Below, piece after piece: positions 11,680-14,917 of a DNA stretch of 64,000 bases. Both the position numbers and the translations under genes were made by a program. The DNA comes from Phallusia mammillata. Lineage: Eukaryota. Where the stretch lies: assembly GCA_965637545.1 (NCBI GenBank), contig OZ281497.1:14446001-14510000 (forward strand), read 5' to 3'. The notes under the pieces are model-generated. The model ran no database searches, was not told the origin of the DNA, and worked only from the letters and a program-made list of their open reading frames with translations. Position 1 is the stretch's first letter; every line of letters starts with the position of its first letter.

Positions 11680-12111
11680 ATGTCATGTAGACTCTGTAAA
11701 AAATGCCTGCTGCAAGTTTCCAAATTGCCAATTGTCAAGAGTGAAAAAACATTTTCAACAAAGTTTGTCCCAAATGCTCCTCAATGGAATGGGACACCAA
11801 AGGGATCACAAAAAAATCAAGAAATTACACAAGAGGAGCTATCAATGTTAGAAAATCTGTCACTTATCAGATTTAAACACTTACCAATAGAAGTTAAAGC
11901 ATTAGAAGATGCTATATATCATGCGAGTGTGTTGCAAGATATTCCTACTGAACATGTGAAACCTTTAACAAGTGTTCTTGAAGACATGCCTTTGTATCTG
12001 TCCAACGATGAAATTACTGTGGCACCTCATGAACATAATGTATTGTCAAATGCCAAAGAAATGTTTGAAGATTTTTTTGTTGCACCACCTGGAAATGTAG
12101 CACTCGAGTAA
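11680..12111 (+). CDS. GATC: Mitochondrial glutamyl-tRNA(Gln) amidotransferase subunit C, single exon
   Basis: 143-aa ORF with basic presequence-like N-terminus, LENLSLIRF, TEHVKPLTSVLED and C-terminal VLSNAKEMFEDFFVAPPGNVAL typical of GatC. Confidence 0.8.
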   Translation: MSCRLCKKCLLQVSKLPIVKSEKTFSTKFVPNAPQWNGTPKGSQKNQEITQEELSMLENLSLIRFKHLPIEVKALEDAIYHASVLQDIPTEHVKPLTSVLEDMPLYLSNDEITVAPHEHNVLSNAKEMFEDFFVAPPGNVALE

Positions 12112-12643: not shown

Positions 12644-14917
12644 ATGGGTTCTGGTGGTTCGAAAAAGTTGCGTTCCATAAGTGTTACAAGGATTAATGAT
12701 TTAAAAACAGCTCCAGCACAACCAACAAGATCAAAAAGTGTTCCATCCAACCTAGGTTCCATTAAGACTCAACATTCATCCAACAAAGTAATTTTTAAAA
12801 TGACATGTAGAATATATGTCTAACATCACATCTTATATAGTAAAGCTGTAGATCTTGTGAACAACACCATCTATGAATCAATATTTACCCAAAGAAAGTA
12901 CATAAAAATTGTAAGCATTATTGTATTTCAAGAGCCACTATGCAAACAACCTTTCAAGAAAGTAGCCAAAAACCAAACTCTTTAACCTGCTATTTGCTTT
13001 GGATACAAAATATTTGACAGCATTATGGACTTGTTTGCAGAAGCTTGACAATAATGACCCCCGAAGCCAGACAAATGGCAAGTTGCCAGTCTCAGAAAGT
13101 GGAAGTGTTCAAGCAATGTCTGTCCAGAACCCCAGTCAGCTACCTAAAAAGGTGGATGCAGATGGTACTTTGGTAACCAATACACTGGAATGGACTGTAA
13201 CAGAACTGTACAATGTTATAGTAGCAGAATCTTGGCTAGCCCAACCTGAGATTCATAATCCAATGTATTTGCTACTGGTAGACTGCAGGTACTACAACGT
13301 TTTTGTTGGTCTTCTTTCAGTTATCTTTTAATGTAGTTTATGGTTTCAGGACTGCAGAGGAATATGCAAAGTCTCACATTGTCACTGCTAAACACCATTC
13401 TTCACTGAACACAGAGTTTGGTTGTCTTCTTAGCGTTCCAAGCCAACTTCAGGAATATGACATGATTGTTTTGTAAGTGTTTAACCTTTTGTTCCTTGAA
13501 TTGGGATTAAACCTTTCACTTTTCAGGTATGATGACATAGATGGTAGCATTTGTTCTGCACTTGATGCCAAGAACATTTCCTATTTTAAACTACATGGCT
13601 CATTTGGTCTATTTCAAACCAAATATCCCTTTTTATGCACCAACAAAGTGGTATCTACCAAAGAACAAAGAGCATATGAAACAAGGGTAAGTATAGCAAA
13701 CTTTGGTTTAAAGGCACCATCTTTAAGGGCATTTTGATTTTTTAGACATGGCCATCTGAAATCCTTGAGGATTGTTTGTACCAGGCTGCTGCTGATCATG
13801 CAACTGATGAGAAAATAATAAAAATTTTAGGTAATGGAAAATGTTTTTTTTTTTCAGAGAAAATGTTATTGTGAATAAAATATTTGTATGTACAGGAATT
13901 ACACACATTGTAAATGTAACACTGGATCAGCCAAATTCATTTCCTGACACAGTAAAGTATATGACAATAAGGTTGGATGATAAATCAATGGTGGATCTGG
14001 GTAGTTGGATTCCCAAAACTTCACAGTTCATATACGAAGCCATAGACAAGTATGAATATTGACCGTTCTTACAACATTACACTTTGGCAACTACCCATGT
14101 GGTGGTATGCTACACACATTGACATGTAGCTTATAACAGGATTCCCGCACAATTTTCATTTGTAAATTCCATGACTTTTCCAAAACAAAAAAATCGAGCA
14201 ATTCCCATCGTAAAACTAGTAAGAAGACTTTGGAAGATGCAGCCAATTTACCACACTTGCAACGAATATACAAACGTTACGTAATTAAAAAAAATTTTTA
14301 AATTCCTATATCTATCTGCCATTTTCAGGGTAAAACAGGCGCCGAATTCCATACTTTTTCAATGACTTGTTCAAAAGTTGGCTCTTTTCAAAACTTTTCC
14401 AGGCCTTAAAAATACAAATTTAAATTCCATAACTTTTCCAGGTTTTCCATGTCTGCAGGAACCCTGTTATAATTTAACACATTGTAATTAAAGTGCAGTT
14501 TGTCAAAGGTTGAGAAGAAAACTCAACAGTAAAAGAGTAAATGCAAAAAGAGCTGTAACGTTTATCCTTGTGAGGCCTTTTTTAAAGCGAATATAAAGCA
14601 ACTAGTTTGTTAAACCGCCAAAAATTGACCATCATGATGTGACAGTTTGTGCTGTTTATTTCAGTCCATTGGTTTCTGATAAAAAGAACAAAAACAAGGT
14701 TTTGGTTCATTGCAACATGGGCCGCAGCAGAAGCTCGACAATTGTTCTTGGCTATCTTATGCAAAAACTGAATTGGTCATTAAAAGATGCCAGTGAATGG
14801 TTGAAAGACTGTAGATCTACAGCCAAGCCCAACAATGGATTTCTTGACCAATTGCTGATACATGAAAGAACTGTTTTTGGAAGAAAACTGACTGACTTCA
14901 AAGACCTACCGTTTTAG
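12644..14917 (+). CDS. STYXL1/MK-STYX-like protein: rhodanese (CH2) domain plus dual-specificity phosphatase domain with intact HCx5R
   Basis: Exons give TELYN...YLLLVDCRTAEEYAKSHIVTA, YPFLCTNK, GITHIVNVT, VLVHCNMGRSRSSTIVLGYLM and KPNNGFLDQL; stop 14915-14917. The exon1/exon2 junction is unresolved. Confidence 0.8.
14137..14466. mobile_element. MITE in an intron of the STYXL1-like gene
   Basis: Imperfect TIRs CAGGATTCCCGCA / TGCAGGAACCCTG, flanked on both sides by TTATAA (14131-14136, 14467-14472). Confidence 0.7.

Follow-up and report, generated by a model that had tools for sequence, protein, structure and literature searches.

STYXL1 (also called MK-STYX) is a textbook pseudophosphatase; recent work has made it a component of radial spoke 3 in motile cilia and has tied it to male infertility. 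What, then, is a gene in the sea squirt Phallusia mammillata that encodes a STYXL1-like protein with the catalytic motif of an active phosphatase? The gene occupies positions 12644 to 14917, on the plus strand, of the 64,000-nucleotide stretch of DNA analyzed here (the window; G000:C4:14446001-14510000 in the assembly). A first-pass annotation had taken it for an active or ancestral-state member of the STYXL1 family that could date the loss of catalysis, and had named a sister clade of true STYXL1 as the alternative. The evidence favors that alternative, because a separate, inactive STYXL1-type gene is present on contig C2 of the same genome (hereafter, the C2 gene). We propose that the window gene very probably belongs to an old holozoan family of rhodanese-dual-specificity phosphatase (DSP) proteins that has kept its catalytic residues, and that it is a paralog of STYXL1. 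If so, STYXL1 has a widespread, uncharacterized sister family with an intact catalytic site, and the sea squirt carries both forms.

The window gene and its family

The window gene has seven exons, joined across introns that are all GT-AG, and its open frame encodes 388 amino acids; neither the window nor any of the modelled loci contains N bases. The gene itself is not new, as its protein has already been deposited and automatically named. A word-index search from a relative's sequence reached P0151, a 388-amino-acid Phallusia mammillata entry (UniRef/nr) deposited as 'Probable rhodanese domain-containing dual specificity protein phosphatase', which differs from our gene model only at V142I and P206H; because of this near-identity, we judge the model to be right. 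Pfam places a Rhodanese domain at residues 120-183 of P0151 (33 bits, E 6.8e-8) and a DSPc domain at residues 236-373 (96.6 bits, E 1.4e-27). Both matches exceed the curated cut-offs, so the two domains are not a chance finding, and exon 7 of the window gene by itself matches DSPc at E 1.6e-19. Together with the GT-AG exon structure, these matches bear out the order that had been read from the letters, a rhodanese domain followed by a DSP domain with an intact catalytic motif. The motifs TELYN, RLDDKS, and HCNMGRSRS all lie exactly where the first-pass annotation had put them, the last within the P-loop context VHCNMGRSRS. The features of the gene are as follows.

12644-12787, plus strand: exon 1, residues 1-48; opens with MGSGGSK, which fits the MGxxxS N-myristoylation consensus, and begins the disordered N-terminal extension
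13041-13288, plus strand: exon 2, residues 49-131; remaining linker and start of the rhodanese domain, with TELYN at 13200-13214 and YLLLVDCR
13350-13472, plus strand: exon 3, residues 131-172; rhodanese domain with EYAKSHIVTAKHH
13527-13686, plus strand: exon 4, residues 172-225; end of the rhodanese domain (YPFLCTNK) and inter-domain linker
13746-13830, plus strand: exon 5, residues 226-254; start of the DSP domain (TWPSEIL...YQAAADHA)
13896-14049, plus strand: exon 6, residues 254-305; DSP core, with the acid loop RLDDKS at 13970-13987
13979-13981, plus strand: codon of the putative general acid Asp282, in the acid loop RLDDKS of exon 6
14665-14917, plus strand: exon 7, residues 305-388 and stop; P-loop HCNMGRSRS at 14708-14734 (Cys321, Arg327, Ser328)
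14879-14914, plus strand: family-specific C-terminal tail GRKLTDFKDLPF, in exon 7

An AlphaFold model of the window protein has a mean predicted local distance difference test (pLDDT) value of 78 and a predicted template modeling score of 0.75. Residues 1-77 fall below a pLDDT of 50, so this part of the N-terminal arm is predicted to be disordered, while blocks of the DSP core mostly reach 85 or more, with lower values (74 and 85) near an insert that precedes the P-loop.

The family was sampled by an exhaustive HMMER search with exon 7, followed by local comparison and clustering at 50% identity; as the query is the active-site exon, the sampling is biased toward intact sites. About 40 clusters align with the protein over its full length and reach 330-455 bits with the family profile. 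P0151 itself, covered from profile position 1 to 373, reaches 415 bits, compared with about 240 bits or less, over a single DSP domain, for nonmembers. Within this exon-7-based sample, all of the approximately 40 family clusters share HCxxGxSRS and an extreme C-terminal tail of the form G-x-K-x-T-D-x-D-x-L-x-F. Moreover, H320, C321, G324, S326, R327, S328, and D282 are invariant in 29 of the 29 aligned family members (alignment A1), as are the rhodanese residues N106, D129, and R131. Such invariance of catalytic residues is the pattern that would be expected under selection for catalysis.

Named members come from tunicates (Styela, Clavelina, and Ciona, besides Phallusia), from other deuterostomes (the amphioxus Branchiostoma, the echinoderms Lytechinus, Apostichopus, and Acanthaster, and the hemichordate Glandiceps), from protostomes (the brachiopod Lingula and the annelid Owenia), and from outside the Bilateria (the cnidarians Nematostella and Clytia and the choanoflagellate Hartaetosiga). 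A teleost, the anchovy Engraulis, also contributes a member (P0030), with the site HCSMGRSRS. The MGxxxS start is found in 24 of 44 family members and in nearly every phylum sampled, with carriers among tunicates, fish, amphioxus, echinoderms, an annelid, cnidarians, and a choanoflagellate. Grouping these proteins exposes how inconsistently the databases name them (e.g., STYXL1, DUSP16, DUSP2-like, and 'rhodanese domain-containing DSP'), and the literature searched yielded no mention of the phrase 'rhodanese domain-containing dual specificity'.

The structure of the active family genes varies. They are intronless in Lytechinus (L032:10001-11263) and Nematostella (L033:10001-11392), where gene length equals the length of the coding sequence and the uninterrupted DNA translates into the protein, and nearly so in amphioxus (Branchiostoma, L031:10001-11380); by comparison, six introns interrupt the Phallusia gene and at least three the anchovy gene.

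From these features, we posit that the window protein is probably a catalytically competent phosphatase. Established DSP chemistry would predict ordinary cysteine-based dual-specificity action, in which the Cys321 thiolate would attack a phosphate bound by Arg327 and the P-loop, Asp282 would act as the general acid that protonates the leaving group, and Ser328 would help to hydrolyze the thiophosphate intermediate. The conserved MGxxxS start suggests that Gly2 may be N-myristoylated cotranslationally, which would tether the protein to a membrane through its disordered arm of approximately 95 residues. The rhodanese domain, for its part, is presumed to be noncatalytic and to do without a basic kinase-interaction motif. 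A comparable pairing of an active DSP domain with an N-terminal MG signal is known from DUSP15 (VHY) and DUSP22 (JSP-1), which are N-myristoylated atypical DUSPs; unlike the window protein, they have no rhodanese domain, and their myristoylated glycine directly precedes the catalytic domain.

An intact motif could also belong to a protein that acts mainly as a noncatalytic scaffold, with conserved residues that bind a phospho-ligand but do not turn it over. STYXL1 itself offers the analogy for such a scaffold, in radial spoke 3 or with the CCT chaperonin, and the two-domain fold predicted for the window protein superposes on STYXL1 as it sits in the radial spoke 3 complex. There, STYXL1 has a structural role, as a subunit that binds CFAP91 and MORN5 (bioRxiv 10.1101/2025.05.19.654877; PMC11779644). 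Nevertheless, we regard a scaffold with an idle active site as distinctly unlikely. The His, Cys, Arg, Ser, and acid-loop Asp residues have stayed invariant for more than 600 million years, from choanoflagellates to chordates, as selection for catalysis predicts, and the known scaffold paralog has lost exactly these residues. Moreover, the conserved myristoylation-type arm suggests a membrane location rather than an axonemal one.

Kinship with STYXL1 and separation from the MAPK phosphatases

Proteins with an N-terminal rhodanese domain and a C-terminal DSP domain include both STYXL1 and the canonical mitogen-activated protein kinase (MAPK) phosphatases (MKPs), and a comparison with structures in the PDB was used to place the window family relative to them. 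The best match of the family profile is bovine STYXL1 (9fqr_Xs), aligned over residues 7-306 of 309 with 207 bits; the same profile scores about 150 bits against the isolated DSP domains of DUSP1/4/5/10/18. Because such a search favors full-length STYXL1 over single-domain PDB entries, it was repeated with the rhodanese domain alone (alignment A2), which gave 68 and 65 bits for STYXL1, 43-45 bits for DUSP10, DUSP16, and DUSP6, and 30 bits for CDC25B. These end-to-end and rhodanese-only scores agree with the first-pass annotation in making the protein STYXL1-like and not a canonical MKP. Only profiles reached STYXL1 in this way, as the single rhodanese exons of the window gene had no PDB match at E<=10. 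Exon 7 as a query preferred DUSP21/18/14 to STYXL1; the DSP domains of DUSP15 and DUSP22 matched it at E values of about 1e-5 to 1e-7, more weakly than those of DUSP18/21/14 and the MKPs.

Structure prediction points the same way. The best superposition of the AlphaFold model is on STYXL1, in the radial spoke 3 structures from mouse and cattle, with a template modeling score of 0.83 that takes in both domains; STYXL1 (PDB 9fqr_Xs and 9d2f_H) therefore shares with the window protein a rhodanese and a DSP domain in the same relative orientation. The two also have in common the rhodanese motifs ELYNxLN, DxR..EYxxSH(I/V)xTA, and GG(F/Y)..F...Y.F(L/F).T.K, an RPN-x-G motif, a C-terminal tail ending in ..TDI..P.(F/Y), and the lack of a kinase-interaction motif. 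They differ at the P-loop, where STYXL1 has Phe or Trp followed by Ser in place of His-Cys (VFSTLGISRS and VFSTRGISRS in the mammalian proteins of the PDB alignments) and the window protein keeps HCx5RS. They also differ at the N terminus, as STYXL1 starts straight at the rhodanese domain and the window protein carries a 95-residue arm with its MGxxxS start. Among the proteins compared, the window family is, by these sequence measures, the closest relative of the pseudophosphatase STYXL1.

The tree that the first-pass annotation had called for comprised 34 family members, the C2 protein, two Phallusia MKPs, one other MKP, and 11 distant rhodanese-DSP proteins. The two Phallusia MKPs, which served as outgroups, were joined from open frames, and their junctions are approximate:

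G000:C4:20127605-20133255, minus strand: MKP-3-like gene, with LMMRRLKANK, HCLAGISRS, and SPNFNFMGQL
G000:C5:23463174-23466357, plus strand: MKP-1-like gene, with IMRRRARG and HCHAGVSRS

In this tree, with its one STYXL1-type sequence, the family and the C2 protein form a single clade apart from the MKPs (MKP3-like, MKP1-like, and P0186), with support of 97/99 (ultrafast bootstrap/Shimodaira-Hasegawa-like approximate likelihood ratio test). Within the family, the closest companions of the window protein are Ciona, Styela, and P0023, in a clade supported at 100/98. The C2 branch is very long (2.4 substitutions per site) and is placed weakly beside the anchovy and tunicate active clade; by the approximately unbiased (AU) test, a monophyletic active family that excludes C2 is not rejected (p 0.19). 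Pairwise scores, which are independent of the tree, give a clearer picture. When 220 local sequences are searched by phmmer with the C2 protein, family members fill the first 25 places, matched over residues 6-294 with 110-139 bits, and the Phallusia MKPs reach 69 bits at most, over the DSP domain only. The tree and the scores together give good support to a group that unites STYXL1 with the active family and leaves out the MKPs. The duplication that separated them could lie in the stem of tunicates and vertebrates or be older.

A divergent canonical MKP of the DUSP1/6/8/10 class, dephosphorylating MAPKs through rhodanese docking, would have the identical two-domain architecture. Canonical MKPs (DUSP6/MKP-3, DUSP10/MKP-5, DUSP16/MKP-7, and DUSP1/MKP-1) share with the window protein an inactive N-terminal rhodanese domain (CH2) and a C-terminal DSP domain with Asp, Cys, and Arg. 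Their rhodanese domains rank second among the structural relatives, the DSP domain scores about as high against DUSP1/4/5/16 as against STYXL1, and some family members bear the automatic names 'DUSP16' and 'DUSP2-like'. What separates the window protein from them, besides its place in a different clade of the tree, is sequence that MKPs hold in common. By eye, no basic kinase-interaction motif is seen in the corresponding stretch (...SSLNTEFGCLLSVPSQ...), where the Phallusia MKPs have LMMRRLKANK and IMRRRARG. The protein also reads KPNNGFLDQL where the MKP signature is SPNFNFMGQL and so is without PNFxFMGQL. Furthermore, the Phallusia genome already holds MKP3-like and MKP1-like genes. Taken together, these points make an MKP identity very improbable, and because the kinase-interaction motif is missing, MAPKs docked in the MKP manner are unlikely substrates.

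The C2 gene beside malate dehydrogenase

A search of the 240-Mb assembly with the family profile returned the window gene, the two MKPs, genes that motif inspection names slingshot-like and DUSP19-like, and a weak collinear set on C2. The C2 set resolves into a minus-strand gene (G000:C2:10591037-10593985; L026:6038-8986) of seven exons, all with GT-AG introns, that encodes 297 amino acids. Its P-loop reads VWSSNGISRS, with Trp for His and Ser for Cys, and the Cys-to-Ser change is common to it and mammalian STYXL1. The second, inactive paralog for which the first-pass annotation had suggested a search is thus present in the genome.

The C2 protein is strikingly close to mammalian STYXL1 in sequence, down to a ...TDIEDPNY right at the stop. 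The significant PDB matches of its exon 3 (45 amino acids) are two STYXL1 chains only (E 1e-9 and 2e-8), and its exon 7 matches almost only STYXL1 (E 4e-7), in an alignment that runs to the same C-terminal residue. The N-terminal arm is missing, as in mammalian STYXL1.

The position of the C2 gene is informative as well. It stands head-to-head with a malate dehydrogenase (MDH) gene that starts near C2:10594970, with approximately 1 kb between the start codons, and this neighbor is of the mitochondrial type, as evidenced by its best PDB matches (human mitochondrial MDH2, 85 bits). The human pair of STYXL1 and MDH2 is, we assume, head-to-head too. In human 7q11.23, the gene order is POR, TMEM120A, STYXL1, MDH2, SRRM3 (PMC9036355, PMC7442816). 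The inactive form thus already adjoins MDH2 in the sea squirt, as in human. Wider synteny with human has not been preserved; the contig of the C2 gene does carry TMEM120, but 22 Mb away. In contrast to the C2 gene, the window gene has a GatC-like gene, not MDH, as its upstream neighbor. Intron positions of the C2 and window genes do not coincide when compared by eye, which is uninformative on their relatedness.

Sequence, shared substitution, missing N-terminal arm, and conserved neighbor, taken together, identify the C2 gene as the true STYXL1 ortholog of Phallusia and the window gene as its active paralog. A true STYXL1 ortholog in an ancestral active state, in a lineage where catalysis was lost only in vertebrates, would fit the finding that the window family is the closest relative of STYXL1, but this identity is highly improbable for the window gene, given that the C2 gene in the same genome matches STYXL1 better, shares sequence stretches with its mammalian form, has the Cys-to-Ser change and no arm, and lies beside MDH2, and that in amphioxus, sea urchin, and Nematostella no MDH gene was found within 10 kb of the active gene. 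The idea that the window gene is STYXL1 itself, still active, is accordingly the part of the first-pass annotation that gives way, largely refuted by the sequence, site, and position of the C2 gene.

Several observations weigh against our placement of the window gene as an active paralog of STYXL1. The C2 protein is the only STYXL1-type sequence in the tree, as vertebrate STYXL1 was compared through PDB alignments only, and with this single, very long STYXL1 branch the AU test does not reject a grouping of C2 with the MKPs (p 0.21). At the C2 locus, sequencing reads assembled only into short contigs of low depth, unspliced and with no splice joints. As to activity, the tunicate proteins have YQG where YLG is usual and, just before the P-loop, a Lys-rich insert (residues 301-310, pLDDT 74) that could affect catalysis.

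Age of the catalytic loss and the fate of the active copy

The window gene had been expected to help date the loss of catalysis. The pair of paralogs is indeed informative on this point, though not by way of the window gene as a STYXL1 in its ancestral state. Since the Phallusia STYXL1 ortholog is already inactive, catalysis was most likely lost before the tunicate-vertebrate split, assuming that the loss happened once. A single loss would make that split a lower bound on its age.

The active copy itself may not have been confined to invertebrates. The anchovy Engraulis encrasicolus has a gene (P0030; L029:10001-15195) that RefSeq names STYXL1, with an intact HCSMGRSRS and an MG start. Its protein groups with the tunicate active clade. 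It aligns end to end with mammalian STYXL1 at only 101 bits and is without the STYXL1-specific motifs that are common to C2 and the mammals. The head-to-head neighbor of the anchovy gene within 10 kb encodes 317 amino acids with no Pfam match and is neither STYXL1-like nor MDH2. These features suggest that some vertebrates, at least, have kept the active paralog.

STYXL1 has a role in sperm flagella (PMC10761714) in addition to its place in radial spoke 3, and the active family is found in organisms with motile cilia or flagella; a cilium- or flagellum-related role for the window protein is our guess by analogy with these. A broader scenario, which we think possible but doubtful, is that the active N-myristoylated family represents the ancestral form of STYXL1 and was originally a phosphatase of cilia or flagella. 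A duplication in the ancestor shared by tunicates and vertebrates would have yielded an MDH2-adjacent copy that lost its arm and His-Cys and became a radial spoke 3 subunit, and the active copy would have been kept in tunicates and some fishes and lost in tetrapods. If true, this would be a dated case of enzyme-to-scaffold subfunctionalization, with both products available in one tractable model organism.

A previous evolutionary study of MK-STYX covered vertebrates only and did not mention active relatives (PMC8907265). To this, the present analysis adds the paralog pair in one genome, the kept neighborhood of STYXL1 and MDH2, the conserved myristoylation motif, and a probable loss of catalysis before tunicates and vertebrates diverged. 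An active and a dead paralog in Ciona or Phallusia would provide an experimental pair with which to explore the purpose of catalysis and the functions that the scaffold has retained.

Two neighboring genes deserve brief mention. Downstream of the sea urchin active gene lies one that carries NDK and Dpy-30 domains; we take it to resemble the NME5-type radial-spoke NDK proteins, a resemblance that is probably coincidence. In the Phallusia window, just upstream of the phosphatase gene, an open reading frame at 11680-12111 on the plus strand matches Pfam GatC at E 4e-6 and is probably the mitochondrial GATC gene, encoding subunit C of the Glu-tRNA(Gln) amidotransferase.

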